In this document: piece after piece, positions 29,040 to 61,692 of the stretch
Layout of the letters: each line of letters opens with the position of its first letter
How positions within the stretch are numbered: the first letter of the stretch is position 1
Source of the DNA: Macrostomum lignano
Lineage: Eukaryota
Length of the DNA stretch: 64,000 nt
Reading direction: 5' to 3'
NCBI GenBank assembly: GCA_002269645.1
Contig: NIVC01000254.1
Span: 1-64,000, forward strand
Translations under genes and position numbers: made by a program
Notes under the pieces: generated by a model
Told to the model about the DNA's origin: nothing
What the model saw: only the letters and a program-made list of their open reading frames with translations
The model's database searches: none

Positions 29040-32000
29040 ATGTCAGTTTCATCTTTCCGCTACGCTTGCATTTACGCATTGATTGCCTTTGTTCTGTGCT
29101 TCAATCATTGGACTTCAGTTACCGGTAAGACGACTTTTATAAGCTACATGTAAAACAAAATTTTATGAAATAATGAATTAAAAATTTTTTTTCAGATGCA
29201 TGCTCAGGCTATAAATAGTCCAAAGTTCAGGAGTCATTGCGTGTCGGGCAGAAGACTCAGGAAGCAGCGTCTATCCTAGCTCCCTAGATGTTGGTTGGTT
29301 AATTCCACTGAGTTCTATAAAAATTAGATTTACGAAGCTGCAGATTCGCGAGTGCTGCGACATGATTCAAATCTACGAGTGGGCGCCATCGAGCGGCTTG
29401 CAGCAGGAAAAATTCAGGCTCACTGGGTCAGATGCGATCAGATCTGAGTATTTGCTGCTAAATGGTCCTGTGCGGGTGACGTTTCGAGCAACTGGTGGAG
29501 GCTCTGCCGTTGAAGGCGGATTTCGACTTATTTACGAGACTGACTACTCTTGTCTCTGGTAATGCTTAAAATTTTATCAAGTACGACTTTAGTAGAAGAA
29601 CGGGAAACTTAGTTTTTAACAAAAAAAATATTTCTGGTTTGCGTGAAAAACACACTAAGGTGATAGGAGCTTTTCATTTTTCGGCACGAAAACAGCATGC
29701 TCATTTAATTGATGGGGTTAGATATAGGTTCAAGTCCTTCTACGTACGGCGTACATGTATATTCAAGTATCCTTTTATTGCATCCAATTTGTTGTAACCG
29801 CCTGAGATTTACAGAATGAAAACATCGATAATATTTATTGTAGAAGCATCGCAAATTGTAAGCCAAAAGAGTGGTGTGAGATTCAGTCATCCTGGCTTTC
29901 CGAAGACGTATCCAACAGATTACATAAAAAGCTGGAGCTTCGATGTTCCCCGAAACTACAATCTGACGATAAGATTTGCAAACTTTTTTACTTATTCTGG
30001 AAATGACATTCTCAGCGTTTTCTATAGTCTAACAAAAGGAAATGACGCGCTGTATCAGTATTCTGGCAGTATAGGGCTTTTCGAGCTTCAATTCCGGCAC
30101 AGTGTGACTCTAACTTTCCGATCACAAAGTAACAACCCTGGCTACCATGGCTTCAGATTTTTATTCAACGTCACCGATACAAAATGTACCAGGTTTACTT
30201 AAGTTTATTCAAGTTTTTAGCTCAATTCAAGTTCAATTTAAACTCAATTTAAATAATGAACCATATTTCAGCCACATGTACAGGCAGAAATCTTTACTCC
30301 ACTTCTAGAGTTATTTCTTGCTTTGATGACTACATGTACTCGAACAGCACTACTGATTCAAGAAACTTGGATGTCCGATGGCCAATTCATTTGAACGACT
30401 ATAATATATCAATTCAATTTACTCAGCTAAAAGTTGAAGACTGCTACGACAGCATCCGCATCTACGAGGGAACCAATTTAATCAGTTCTGACAAGGAGAA
30501 GTTCAGGCTAAGCAGCAGGTCGGAGGCGCTGAATTCTGAATTCCGATTGAACGGCCCCATTCTGGTGAGATTCGTCACCGGCAGTTTGATCGCCGCTAGA
30601 GGTTTTAGATTTAGTTACGGGATGATATTACATCCGGTTTCAGGTAAATCATCTGTTGCACAATGCTTTAATTTTCATTAGAGGCAGGGGGCTGCGTGCA
30701 CTTAAGAGACATTGTCATATAACCGGCGAGAGGCATTACTGCCCATTCCGCCGACTCCCCTGAGCAGGCACACAAGCGCGCGGATACGTACGCAGTCATA
30801 CGCACAGGCATTCACACACATTATTTATCGTTAGGCATGTACACTTCAATGTCTTAGGGGTTGACCATCAAGGCCATTAATCGCACGAACAGAGCCAAGC
30901 CGAGGTTCCAATTTAGCCCCAAATTGATGTGACTGCACTTGGAATCGAGCCTGGGCCGCTGGCACATCAGGGAACAACAAGGCTACGACCCATATTAAAC
31001 CATACGATGAAATTCAACCATAAGCATTTTCTGTTCGACCAATGATACTGTATTCAAAATAAAATTTACACTTTCTTAGAATCAACGGAAATTTTGCGAC
31101 AGCGTAGCGGTGTTCGAACCAGCCATCCTGGGTTTTCAAGCCATAATCATCCGGCCAAATACAAAATTACTTGGAGCTTCGATATCCCAGAAGGCTACAT
31201 TTTAACAATAAAATGCACATATTTTATTACACATGACTCCGACTACTTGCGCTTCTACCAGGGCATCGTGCCGATTAATAAATGTCAAGTCCTATATCAC
31301 TATTCTGGAAGCATTCCAAAGGAATTACAGCTTCAGTTTGCTCGCAACTTGACCCTCGTTTTTCAAGCCATTAGAGGTGCGAATCCAGGCTTCAGATTTG
31401 AGTTTACGGTTTCTAAAACAAGTAGGTAGTTTATTAATTTCACATTACAAATTTGTTCCTTTATGTATTTTATCTGATCCCGAATGAATGCAAATTGAGA
31501 GATTTCATCCTGAGCTGTGGTCTCTAACTGGAGTAGTTCATTTTCGAGCAGTGTTTGAGTTTAGGCTGCTCCCATGTGAGGCACAATTGTTGGCTGAGAA
31601 GCATTGATAACGTCAGCACTCTCGCGTGCCCGATTAAACGGGTGAGGACCACTAGGACTTACCGGTGTACGATAGTAACTTTTAGTAGTCCTTGATTATA
31701 TTTTAGACGATGCTAAATATAGCTTACTGCTAAAAACCTTCGAAACTCATCAGCAGATGATGGAAAACACCATCACCGACTCCAAGTGTCTTGGCACAGC
31801 AATTTCACAGTTCTCGGGGGCGGCTCAGCCATCGCTCATTGGACGGTCGGTCATTGAATGCTGACTGCTGAATGGCAGTACTGCTGTGCTACAGTTGCAC
31901 CTGCCGAATCTTAATTGGTTCGTTTTTTGTGTTCTGTAGACATTCATGTACTGTAAGTTTTGTACTTCAGCCATTTCCCAATCATATCTGCAGGCTTCAG

Positions 32001-32329
32001 GCTTGCTAAAGTCTGGGAGAGGCCGCTGCTTGTAGATTCCCTAGCAACTGCCGTCGTGGCTCTGGTCGTTCTCACCGGTGTCGCCTGCGCGCTCATCAAA
32101 ACCGTCAGGAGATCATCGACGGAGCGGCCGGCAGCTGCGATGCAGCAGCCCTTGATGATGCAACCAGTTTGTAACGAGTACCATAGCGATACTACTGTGG
32201 TGAGTAGCTGATTAATAGTAAAATATTAAGTATTGTTTTAATGCCGTAACAGAAGAACTAACAAAAGATTACTATCTCTCATTGCAGCGCCACTATGCCA
32301 CCGGAGTTTTCACCAAAAATGGCCAGTAG
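29040..32329 (+). pseudogene. CUB-domain membrane receptor paralog 1, pseudogene (SP, 4 CUB, one two-exon domain, TM, tail)
   Basis: Exons 29040-29124, 29196-29558, 29844-~30192, 30272-30643, 31080-31421, ~31474-31650, ~31760-31910, 31994-32199, 32288-32329. Lesions: frameshift near 29214 giving TAG, apparent indels near 29551, 30183 and 31560, acceptor AG>AT at 31472-73, in-frame TGA at 31485 and 31862. Confidence 0.85.
30712..30991 (-). mobile_element. tRNA-derived SINE, same family as 51359-51650
   Basis: The reverse complement gives A-box-like GTAGCC and B-box-like GGCTCGATTCC, then AAGTGCAGTCACAT..GCTCAGGGGAGTCG shared with the 51-kb copy. Confidence 0.75.
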
Positions 32330-59539: not shown

Positions 59540-59848
59540 AGTTGGTTAATTAGTTAGTTATTTAGTTAGTTAGTTAGTTAGTTAGTTAGTTAGTTAGTTA
59601 GTTAGTTAGTTAGTTAGTTAGTTAGTTAGTTAGTTAGTTAGTTAGTTAGTTAGTTAGTTAGTTAGTTAGTTATTTAGTTAGTTAGTTAGTTATTTAGTTA
59701 GTTAGTTAGTTAGTTAGTTAGTTAGTTAGTTAGTTAGTTAGTTAGTTAGTTAGTTAGTTAGTTAGTTAGTTAGTTAGTTAGTTAGTTAGTTAGTTAGTTA
59801 GTTAGTTAGTTAGTTAGTTAGTTAGTTAGTTAGTTAGTCAGTTAGTTA
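59540..59848. repeat. (TTAG)n microsatellite
   Basis: About 75 units, ending ~33 bp before the 59882 acceptor. Confidence 0.97.
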
Positions 59849-61692
59849 AGCTGTGATTAGAATGCATTAATAACCTTGCAGCTGACCCGGAATCAGTAAT
59901 CATCGATCTGAAGCAGCCACAGTTCGCCTCAGTGACTGGAGCGGTGCAGTTTCGGGCGATATCCAGACTTGCCTGTCCCAGTGTGAAGCATCGGTGCGAG
60001 CTGCAGACAACCGATGGCAAATCTATCACTGCTCAACTAATCAAAAAGGTAAAGACGTAATTTATTTAGTAAATATTTGTCAGCAGATTCCTAAATAACC
60101 TGTGCAACTGCTATTTTCTAGAATATCACAGAGCCAACAGAGCCACAGTGCCTCAGCTTGGTGACGTCGCAGTTTGTAGCGGTTGCTCAACCATCTGTCA
60201 TCACAGGCGCCGTCATCAGGTGCCGCCTGTTTGACGGTAGCTTTGAGCGTCTCAAGCTGCCACAACAGACCACTAGTAAGTACTTATTCGCAAATTTTCT
60301 TTAAATTTAATTTTTGGTACTGCCGCACATCGCGGCGTCAATGAACCCGCAGCAAGCGAGGAGCAAGCAGTTTTCCCTAATCTGTTTATCTCTGAGCATA
60401 CCCAGGCCACGGATATGAGGCTAGGTACCAATGTTGGTTTTTGCGAGATGGAATTTTAGAGATTGTCTACTGCCTAGTAGAAAGTGTGGCACTTACTTCC
60501 AAATCATGCTTAGTGTGAGAAAATAAACTACGTCATGTTAGAGTGCACTTTGCAGCGATAGCAATAGAAAATTAGACTGGAAACCAATTGAGCTGTTATT
60601 TCCTCGGTGCCTATATTTGGGACTTATAAAAATGTCCTGGAAGTGCCACACCTTTTTATAAAAAATCATATAGTTTTGTTCACATAAGCAAGGGGTGCAA
60701 TTGGTTTAGAGAGCTCATAAACCTGAGAATTTGATTTTCAGAAGCGTTATTTGCAGAAAAAGCCTCCAAAACTTTATGTGCACTAACTCTGGGCTGCGCG
60801 TTGTGGTGCCGCAAGAAAAATCCAACTGATTGTGTTTAATGGTAAAGAGTTGCTTGATCTTTGCAGATGTACGGTTGCAAGGAGTCTGGGAGCTGCCGCT
60901 GCTCATTTCTTCATCAACAATAGCTGTCATCTCCCTAATCGCACTCTCAGCTGTTAGCTACTTTCTATTCAAAAGTTTGAAAGCCAAACGATCAAAATCA
61001 ATTGAAATGAATATTCGTCCACAGCCAAAGCCAAATCCTTATAAAAAGCATGTAAGTAGGCCTAGACTAAGTGGGTATTTACTCGTATCTTTCAAACCGC
61101 AATCTAATTCAGCCTTGCACTTTCGTTTTACGCTTTCAGCCCGCCAGTGAAGTCTATTTGAACTAATGTAGTACTTGACTTTCCATGCCGATTTTTATTC
61201 CATTTTTATCCTTGTCTACCTTTGATTTTGTCAATCAATAATCTACCAGACACTACTCAATACTGAGTAGTTAGTTCCTGAGTATAAAAACTGAGTATTG
61301 AGTACCTGAATCTACACTGATATTCTCTAAAAATTTGTGAATTGCACTTTAGAAATTGAGTTTTCTAAAGTCCTACTTAATTGTTCCGATATTGATTGAC
61401 TATGTGCTTTTTTTCATTTTGCTTCTGGTTCACACGCCTTTTGAAAATGCACTGATTAAAATATTCTTAAAACCTGTGCATATTAGTATCCATATGAAAT
61501 GCATATTTTTACACCTCACATGTATATATGTATCTTTTCAATCGACGATGTCCCAGGTTCTCAGCTTCTATCCAATATTTCTATAGTAATACGACCTTTG
61601 CTCTGGAGTCTAATTATTATTTTAAGATTGACCGGACTTTTTCACGTAAATACGGATAGGCCCAGTACCCTATTTTTTACCATAAATATGAG

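Follow-up and report, generated by a model that had tools for sequence, protein, structure and literature searches.

The described proteins that come closest to the genes reported here are built around CUB domains. Cubilin, which is peripheral, has 8 EGF and 27 CUB domains; PCOLCE is secreted and combines 2 CUB domains with an NTR domain. Neuropilin combines 2 CUB, 2 F5/8C and a MAM domain with a transmembrane (TM) segment, NETO/SOL-2 and LEV-10 carry an LDLa domain before the TM segment, SEZ6 and CSMD have repeated CUB domains with sushi/CCP spacers, and CDCP1, a protein of type I, has a number of CUB-like domains and a tail phosphorylated on tyrosine. The tail of SEZ6 carries an NPxY-type motif. 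Here we describe a locus of the flatworm Macrostomum lignano in a window of 64,000 nucleotides (positions 1 to 64,000 of NIVC01000254.1, assembly Mlig_3_7, GCA_002269645.1; window coordinates are those of the record), in which three paralogs, P1, P2 and P3, all on the + strand, lie within 29040-61166. The best overall explanation is probably that they are a triplet of CUB/immunoglobulin (Ig)-like receptor genes so far known from M. lignano only, shaped by modular turnover and by decay of redundant copies; the turnover of the gene family is real, but for a redundant genome the case is fairly ordinary.

The best protein matches of the hand-spliced P2 gene are P0001 (BOX15_Mlig000815g2, 965 aa) and P0002 (BOX15_Mlig014562g1, 759 aa), both from M. 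lignano, and the described systems differ from these genes in consistent ways. Cubilin and PCOLCE (3kq4, 6fzv) offer the closest solved CUB sequences and folds and share tandem CUB pairs and, as read from the alignments, the Ca2+-ligand acids of most A and B domains, but both lack the Ig-like stalk, the TM segment and the tail of the family. SEZ6 and CSMD are similar in their repeated CUBs, small beta-sandwich spacers, single TM segment and short tail, yet the spacers are sushi/CCP domains there and two-exon Ig-like domains here, and no sequence homology was detected outside CUB; PF00084 found no match in P0002 or in the exon translations, and the predicted spacer fold is that of Ig. SOL-1, LEV-10, NETO and neuropilin are likewise single-pass proteins with CUB-led ectodomains, and Neto2 and neuropilin a1a2 are among the structural matches; in contrast, this family is without LDLa, discoidin/F5-8C and MAM domains, its stalk and tail motifs differ, and no orthologs were found outside M. 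lignano. Neuropilin was rejected for want of an F5_F8_type_C or MAM match, the stalk being Ig-like, and NETO/SOL-2 and LEV-10 for want of an Ldl_recept_a match in P0002 or the exon translations. CDCP1 differs in domain order and tail, and its profile PF23665 reached 19.3 bits (cut-off 27) in one P1 exon only. A first-pass annotation, made from the letters of the window, had not recognised the architecture as that of neuropilin, cubilin, tolloid, CDCP1, LRP12 or SOL-1/NETO. None of the CUB families that it named fits, and membership of neuropilin, NETO, SOL-1, LEV-10, CDCP1, SEZ6, CSMD and cubilin was rejected.

Gene architecture

To map the paralogs, P2 exon peptides were compared with the window by tblastn, and the three sub-regions with one another by tblastx; exon limits were set by listing AG/GT sites and relating them to the reading frames. 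Both searches confirmed the three co-oriented paralogs of the first-pass annotation; they share about 40% amino acid identity with one another and are old duplicates forming a tandem triplet. Chance similarity was ruled out by tblastn E-values of 1e-18 to 1e-27. The family plan, in which we place high confidence as a structural description of the whole, consists of a signal peptide, (CUB-A, CUB-B)n with one to two or more such pairs, one to six Ig-like domains of the kinds Y and X, a WE(R/L)PL motif, one TM segment and a short tail, and the products are probably type-I membrane proteins. The features of the three genes are as follows.

P1, an old pseudogene
29040-32199 (+): whole of P1
29040-29124 (+): signal-peptide exon, intact
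29196-29551 (+): first CUB-A, with a frameshift and a TAG near 29196-29217
29844-30185 (+): first CUB-B
30272-30643 (+): second CUB-A
31080-31421 (+): second CUB-B
about 31467-31641 (+): Ig-like X exon 1, with an in-frame stop, a frameshift and an unclear acceptor
about 31754-31927 (+): Ig-like X exon 2, with an in-frame stop
31994-32199 (+): RLAKVWERPLL-TM exon

P2, the middle gene
34248-48619 (+): gene span
34248-34323 (+): signal-peptide exon, MKTCTRFFRYFQLAVFGLLFWFSSS, phase-1 donor, 72% amino acid identity to the N-termini of P0001/P0002
34402-34752 (+): CUB-A1, phase 1/1, 93% nucleotide identity to A2
36209-39183 (-): pol open reading frames (ORFs) of a long terminal repeat (LTR) retrotransposon, with reverse transcriptase, RNase H and a weak sub-threshold integrase match, in the 5.6-kb intron between A1 and A2
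39891-42735 (+): two tandem 1.25-kb units, 87% identical, each with a CUB-A pseudo-exon fragment (psiA), a CUB-A and a CUB-B
40143-40257, 40361-40711, 40797-41126 (+): psiA, A2 and B1 of unit 1
41734-41851, 41953-42303, 42394-42729 (+): psiA, A3 and B2 of unit 2
43085-43245 (+): Ig-like Y exon 1, phase 1 to 0, 78-89% amino acid identity to P0001/P0002
43359-46241 (-): insertion of about 2.9 kb with transposase-like ORFs at 43920-45743 and a Spin-doc zinc finger (PF18658, E 3e-6), within the intron that separates the two Y exons
46318-46465 (+): Ig-like Y exon 2, phase 0 to 1
46627-46796, 47004-47154 (+): Ig-like X' exons
47537-47666 (+): fused Y' remnant exon, 130 nt, Y1' and Y2' joined by a 341-bp deletion at 47635, in-frame TGA at 47644-47646
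47793-47959, 48034-48187 (+): Ig-like X exons
48270-48496 (+): TRLAGVWERPLL-TM-tail exon
48587-48619 (+): terminal micro-exon, PDDSTGVYVT and stop

P3, the nonsense-bearing gene
55572-61166 (+): gene span
55572-55680 (+): signal-peptide exon, MLILNHFLHQMGCRSINGLLLGVALLILSRSALQPV, 1.1 kb upstream of the first CUB exon
56785-57147 (+): CUB A1
57223-57573 (+): CUB B1, with a TGA at 57279-57281 (codon 177)
57656-58051 (+): CUB A2
58136-58528 (+): CUB B2
59126-59274, 59357-59516 (+): Ig-like Y
59882-60048, 60122-60275 (+): Ig-like X
60867-61051 (+): VRLQGVWELPLL-TM-tail exon
61140-61166 (+): micro-exon, PASEVYLN and stop

Each CUB domain of P1, P2 and P3 occupies a single exon whose acceptor and donor are both of phase 1, in the order ABAB in P1, AABAB in P2 and ABAB in P3. 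PF00431 matched the A and B exons of P1 and P2 at 21.6-43.6 bits (cut-off 21.4; E 2e-5 to 4e-11) and P0002 at 66.7 bits; P3 B1 fell below threshold, and P3 A2 and B2 had no Pfam match. A phmmer search of PDB sequences returned cubilin CUB5-8 (3kq4, E 1.3e-11) and PCOLCE (E 6e-10). For the P3 A2-B2 pair, an AlphaFold2 model (AF2; predicted local distance difference test, pLDDT, 70; predicted template modelling score, pTM, 0.75) matched PCPE-1, MASP-1/2 CUB1-EGF-CUB2, neuropilin a1a2, cubilin and Neto2 in Foldseek (E 2e-10 to 2e-7, prob 1.0), and these two exons are predicted to fold as a CUB pair. The CUB numbers of 4, 5 and 4 given by the first-pass annotation are thus right on Pfam and PDB sequence matches and, for P3 A2-B2, on AF2 and Foldseek. 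The cysteines are atypical, with the pattern CC...C...CC in A and at most one Cys in B. On reading the alignment, the Glu/Asp/Asp of the Ca2+ site (F-x-x-D/L-x-E, C/Y-D, S/T-D) are kept in A and B of P2, in P3 A1 and in A and B of P0027, and the acidic positions are lost from P3 B1, A2 and B2.

The stalk domains are of two kinds, Y and X, each encoded by two exons (phase 1-0-1) and each with four conserved cysteines. Intact copies number 1 (X) in P1, 3 (Y, X' and X) plus one remnant in P2, and 2 (Y and X) in P3; the earlier count of 1, 2 and 2 had missed the Y domain of P2. Over the 504-aa Y-X-Y'-X-TM portion of P0002, no Pfam family, with I-set, V-set, C1/C2-set and fn3 included, matched even at E <= 10, so the fold was taken from structure prediction. 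Six Y-X modules of the family were aligned, and a P0001 segment 90% identical to the window peptide served as target. The AF2 model of the Y-X pair (pLDDT 82.4, pTM 0.75) is all-beta with two sandwiches, and Foldseek found 972 PDB matches at E <= 0.001, led by chains that consist of two Ig domains (Fab light chains and IgG Fc; E ~6e-7, prob 1.0) and align over both domains of the model. UniProt labels the family member P0023 'Ig-like domain-containing'. On this model, Y and X are Ig-like domains.

An RLxxVWExPLL motif precedes the TM segment in P1, P2 and P3 (FRLAKVWERPLL, TRLAGVWERPLL and VRLQGVWELPLL, respectively), and its juxtamembrane core WE(R/L)PL is conserved across the family. The tails of P1, P2, P3, P0027 and P0023 contain NxxY in the forms NQYY, NPY, NEYH, NNSY and NPVY. 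At or near the C-terminus, 8-12 residues past NxxY, comes (G/E)VY(V/L)(T/N), always on its own micro-exon (P0001, P0002, P0025, P0027 and P0023; 48430-48619 and 61020-61166 of the window). The micro-exons of P2 and P3 match the C-terminal ends of P0001, P0002, P0019 and P0025, which are GenBank models. Spliced mapping of P0001 on locus copy L001 and of P0002 on L002 gave back exactly this exon plan. Since the Mlig_3_7 annotation was built from RNA sequencing (RNA-seq) with StringTie, TACO, TBONE and TransDecoder (PMC5730564), the exon plans of P0001, P0002, P0019, P0025 and P0027, micro-exon included, rest on transcript evidence. The shared plan proposed at first pass (signal peptide, phase-1 CUB exons, two-exon proximal domain and RLxxVWExPLL-TM exon) was confirmed, with the terminal micro-exon found in P2 and P3.

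State of the three genes

P1 is a dead pseudogene here. Read from its natural acceptor at 29196, A1 gives DACSGYK followed by a stop (TAG), and the remainder of A1 lies in another frame. P1 lacks a Y domain, and the sequence downstream of it showed no recognisable micro-exon. P1 is dead in the window and only fragments of it align in L001 and L002, from which we infer that it died earlier than P2 and P3 acquired the young lesions described below.

The eleven exons of P3 reproduce P0025 (817 aa) save for one TGA. Alignment to P1 and P2 directly upstream of the first CUB exon gave no signal exon; it was located by searching for hydrophobic ORFs that begin with Met and end in a phase-1 donor, and is confirmed by P0025. 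The GenBank model of P3, P0019 (PAA86983.1, BOX15_Mlig017866g1, 633 aa), covers 57303-61166 and begins at the first Met past the TGA, and the annotated record thus carries the P3 stop. The record locus that encodes this model, NIVC01000254.1:47303-71166, matches the window letter for letter over 47303-64000. A (GTTA)78 microsatellite occupies 59537-59848 in the P3 intron between Y and X, and the L002 blastn alignment ends inside it, at about 59658.

P2 has an open frame only if the exon at 47537-47666 is skipped, and its description as intact is doubtful. Relative to L002, P2 has lost 341 bp between X' and X, which joins the start of Y1' to the end of Y2'. The fused exon retains the original acceptor and donor with the frame shifted, and its inclusion yields ...AASIRGRFD followed by a stop, ending the product ahead of the last Ig-like domain and the TM segment. 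With this exon skipped and Y included, the model is 1001 aa. Of the first-pass assignment of dead, intact and nonsense-bearing to P1, P2 and P3, the first and last therefore stand, and the second applies only to the skipped form. The length of 898 aa given for P2 corresponds to a model without Y, which measures 895 aa with a read-through end and 898 aa with the micro-exon end; the length changes to 1001 aa when Y is added. No gene models are listed in the part of the record at 47303-57302, which holds the last six exons of P2, the 5' part of the gene being outside that listing.

The psiA fragments at 40143-40257 and 41734-41851 are degenerate 3' halves of a CUB-A exon with stops, about 100 bp 5' of the full A exons; they are not in L001 or L002 and are leftovers of older unequal exchange. 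The interval of the LTR element, 36209-39183, has no alignment to L001 or L002. Beside its pol ORFs a 415-bp unit occurs twice in tandem at 35554-36368 with 100% identity, which may reflect either a duplication of very recent date or an artefact of assembly; a CUB-B remnant after P2 A1 and the LTRs of the intronic retroelement were sought, and only this duplication was seen. The 2.9-kb insertion is hAT-like in appearance, with no transposase domain found in it. It is recent, as it is missing from the three other locus copies, L004, L002 and L001.

Locus copies and modular turnover

The redundant Mlig_3_7 assembly contains at least four copies of the locus, the window included, with identities of at least 80-98%. 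Each fetched locus was compared to the window by blastn.

NIVC01000293.1 (L004): 98.4% identity to the window over 47635-62886, without the 2.9-kb hAT-like insertion and without the 341-bp deletion
NIVC01000829.1 (L002): flanks 97-98.5% identical to the window, the UBE2M-like gene among them, P1 as fragments only
NIVC01002005.1 (L001): 80-95% identity to the window, more diverged

The lesions differ from copy to copy and are mutually exclusive across the four. The P3 TGA, the P2 341-bp deletion and the hAT-like insertion are private to the window, and P3 codon 177 is GGA (Gly) in L004 and L002. The nearest copy, L004, has an intact P3 and a P2 stop at a different place: its Y exon 2 (locus positions 353-500) contains an in-frame stop, reading ...SAQKLY, stop, FSG, and its Y' is kept intact. 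In the window and L004, the two closest copies, P2 therefore bears disabling lesions that are independent of each other, and neither P2-type gene has a protein model in the record stretches listed. Intact P2-type genes, with only 2 CUBs, are present in two copies, L001 and L002, and intact P3-type genes also occur on other copies.

Domain number varies among these near-identical copies. The P2-type product of L002 is SP-A-B-Y-X-Y'-X-TM (SP, signal peptide; 759 aa, P0002), and that of L001 has the same plan with an extra X-Y' unit (965 aa, P0001); the layout in the window is SP-A-[LTR element]-(psiA-A-B)x2-Y-X'-[Y' remnant]-X-TM. P2-type genes thus have 5 CUBs in the window vs 2 in L001 and L002, and the copies have 3 (plus the remnant), 4 or 6 intact Ig-like domains in the stalk. 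All domains are modules bounded symmetrically by phase 1, so CUB or Ig-like domains can be gained or lost by unequal crossing-over with the frame preserved, and such in-frame gain and loss has occurred repeatedly.

Family extent and selection

An exhaustive phmmer search of 1.84 billion representative proteins with the Ig-like/TM/tail part gave 10 matches, all from M. lignano, and a search with a profile built from five divergent members likewise returned M. lignano proteins only. With full-length P2 as query, the matches outside M. lignano were generic CUB proteins at 20-28% identity, and no orthologs of the same plan were found elsewhere; the spliced P2 model likewise surfaced no close P2-type proteins beyond P0001 and P0002. 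These searches support the first-pass view that the family is lineage-specific, so far seen in M. lignano only. The genome-wide count that the first-pass annotation had proposed returned a small family of about five gene types, the three of the triplet plus P0027 and P0023, with the locus itself in the several copies described above.

P1-type: known as a pseudogene only
P2-type: P0001, P0002, P0015-18, P0024 and probably P0033/34
P3-type: P0019, P0020 and P0025
Dispersed SP-A-B-Y-X-TM gene: P0027 on NIVC01000900.1, with no neighbouring paralog, and fragments P0021, P0022 and P0026-32
P0023: a separate gene type, dispersed

Ratios of non-synonymous to synonymous substitution (dN/dS) were calculated per exon by the Nei-Gojobori method, pairwise between P2-type copies, from small counts. 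They are mostly 0.07-0.64; exon Y1 reaches about 0.8-1.4 in comparisons with L001 and 0.64 against L002. Within one pair of copies, synonymous divergence ranges from 0 to 0.35 between exons, and this patchwork is suggestive of gene conversion. As far as these sequences can be read, this pattern indicates purifying to relaxed selection on P2-type copies, with no diversifying signature. P3 of the window differs from that of L004 by 4 synonymous and 3 non-synonymous codons and from that of L002 by 3 synonymous and 9 non-synonymous codons, counts that are small.

Interpretation

The DV1 line has additional large chromosomes, and its assembly has 180 Mb of duplicated blocks at least 95% identical (PMC5730564); a 2026 paper terms M. 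lignano a successful neopolyploid (PMC12896417). It is reasonably likely that the young lesions (the P3 TGA, the P2 deletion and the hAT-like insertion) represent decay of redundant genes after recent genome duplication or aneuploidy, arising under relaxed constraint on homeologous or aneuploid copies. Function would be carried by the intact copies encoding P0001, P0002 and P0025, which come from the RNA-seq-built annotation. The proteins are probably cell-surface receptors or co-receptors. Because acidic Ca2+-site positions are kept in some CUBs, some of the CUB heads may bind an extracellular protein ligand, probably Ca2+-dependently, and the NxxY/YVT tail may recruit PTB-, SH2-type or endocytic adaptors. 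We put forward this specific receptor mechanism, which is drawn from motifs and alignments, only tentatively.

The first-pass annotation had seen in the triplet a lineage-specific, fast-turnover recognition family (immune, gamete, adhesion or sensory) in apparent birth-and-death evolution. Spelled out, this reading would have the family act in allorecognition, immunity, gamete or mate recognition or sensing and evolve under diversifying selection, with the pseudogenes and the varying domain numbers as outcomes of that regime. The family is lineage-restricted and tandem, pseudogenes included, its CUB and Ig-like numbers differ between near-identical copies, exon Y1 and the P3 comparison with L002 show raised non-synonymous change, and reproduction-related genes evolve fast in Macrostomum (PMC7336406). 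The structural side of that proposal is real, as seen in the 2 vs 5 CUBs, the 3, 4 or 6 stalk domains, the pseudogenes and the transposable elements, but most exons have a dN/dS of 0.1-0.6, some five gene types genome-wide do not make a large repertoire, and evidence of testis-, ovary- or tail-specific expression is absent from the data of Brand et al. (2020), whose mapping to these genes is uncertain. In addition, each young lesion is private to one of four redundant copies, as post-polyploidy decay predicts; these lesions look like decay of redundant copies, the simpler explanation, rather than like a regime specific to the family. We consider a recognition family of this kind unlikely. A related reading takes the cluster for a polymorphic locus by which a simultaneous hermaphrodite tells self from non-self or recognises mates. 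Variation in module number would then be allelic diversity with a function, arising from gene conversion and the shuffling of exons in frame, and not decay. This appears highly improbable; if true, it would represent a flatworm-specific receptor class in which CUB ligand heads are combined with a stalk of Ig-like domains and a signalling tail of the NxxY/YVT kind. Some observations weigh against the explanation we prefer, a lineage-specific triplet with decay of redundant copies. The P3 excess of non-synonymous over synonymous changes is compatible with relaxed and positive selection alike, the lack of homologs may stem in part from proteomes of other macrostomorphs missing from the databases, and Mlig000815.g1, which is not securely mappable to P0001, was classed as 'Non-Specific' by body region (Brand et al., 2020), as was Mlig000815.g8 in the supplements of that study.

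The proteins could alternatively be auxiliary subunits or co-receptors that assemble with ion channels or signalling receptors through their CUBs, like SOL-1, LEV-10, NETO and neuropilin, and would then not themselves take up ligands or signal. An ectodomain with CUB heads, one TM segment and a short tail would suit that role, and the Foldseek matches of the CUB pair include Neto2 in its complex with GluK2 and neuropilin a1a2. However, LDLa, discoidin and MAM domains are all missing, and the Ig-like stalk and the NxxY...VYVT tail are foreign to those proteins, which leaves this role a minority prospect. A further reading, that both genes are really intact and that PacBio sequencing or assembly errors account for the TGA in P3 and the 341-bp deletion in P2, seems very improbable. 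Long-read errors are mainly indels and less often substitutions. The TGA is one base away from GGA, the exact 415-bp tandem duplication at 35554-36368 is a possible artefact, and the assembly is redundant and based on long reads (PMC5730564); on the other side, the 341-bp gap left by the deletion is clean and its flanks align without a flaw, the deletion junction, '...ASEADSIEFSELPP', recurs in P0018 (UniProt A0A1I8HLB7, a gene model of the A0A1I8 series), and the GenBank P3 model begins past the TGA, the stop being in the annotated record. Residues of the L004 type occur in P0017. The A0A1I8 series we take to derive from the earlier ML2 assembly; if that is right, the P2 variants are not artefacts of a single assembly.

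The genes define an uncharacterised receptor family with a CUB, Ig-like and TM architecture for which no prior description was found: in the full-text literature these genes are unmentioned, and M. lignano together with 'CUB domain' returned unrelated bioadhesion work only. Family proteins are already deposited in GenBank and UniProt, labelled only 'hypothetical' or 'CUB domain-containing'. The locus is a clean case of symmetric phase-1 exons permitting in-frame domain gain and loss, seen between near-identical copies, and its four copies illustrate early pseudogenisation after recent duplication or aneuploidy in M. lignano and are possible markers for homeologous copies. M. lignano is a transgenic model tractable by RNA interference (RNAi), and family members are candidates for in situ hybridisation and RNAi. 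The gene models can be corrected, P2 being missing from the listed part of the record and P3 truncated, with modest practical consequence; the locus has no bearing on a long-standing open question.

Surrounding sequence

A ubiquitin-conjugating enzyme exon lies at 20178-21397 (-), with its ORF at 20451-20828 (PF00179, E 1.5e-29), and resembles UBE2M/UBC12. This gene is 98.5% identical to the syntenic gene of L002 and is the synteny anchor of the locus. The first 20 kb (6-20427) consist mainly of long minisatellite arrays, an abundance that fits the reported share of tandem repeats in the M. lignano genome, 15%.

6-880: 24-mer x37
3467-5072: 24-mer x68
7033-8553: 16-mer x96
8979-9825: 22-mer x38
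10269-11108: 21-mer x40
18033-18698 and 19476-20427: further arrays

Flanked by minisatellites, an ORF at 5173-5925 (+) matches PF00001 (E 4e-11) over the TM4-TM6 region, has a long Gln/Lys-rich third loop, and is probably one exon of a G-protein-coupled receptor gene. Non-LTR retrotransposon ORF fragments lie at 15457-16826 (-/+), with an RVT_1 match (E 5e-5) at 15704-16477. Non-LTR fragments are also found at 26880-28900 (+), where reverse transcriptase-like ORFs (26880-28572, no Pfam match) reach the P1 start codon.

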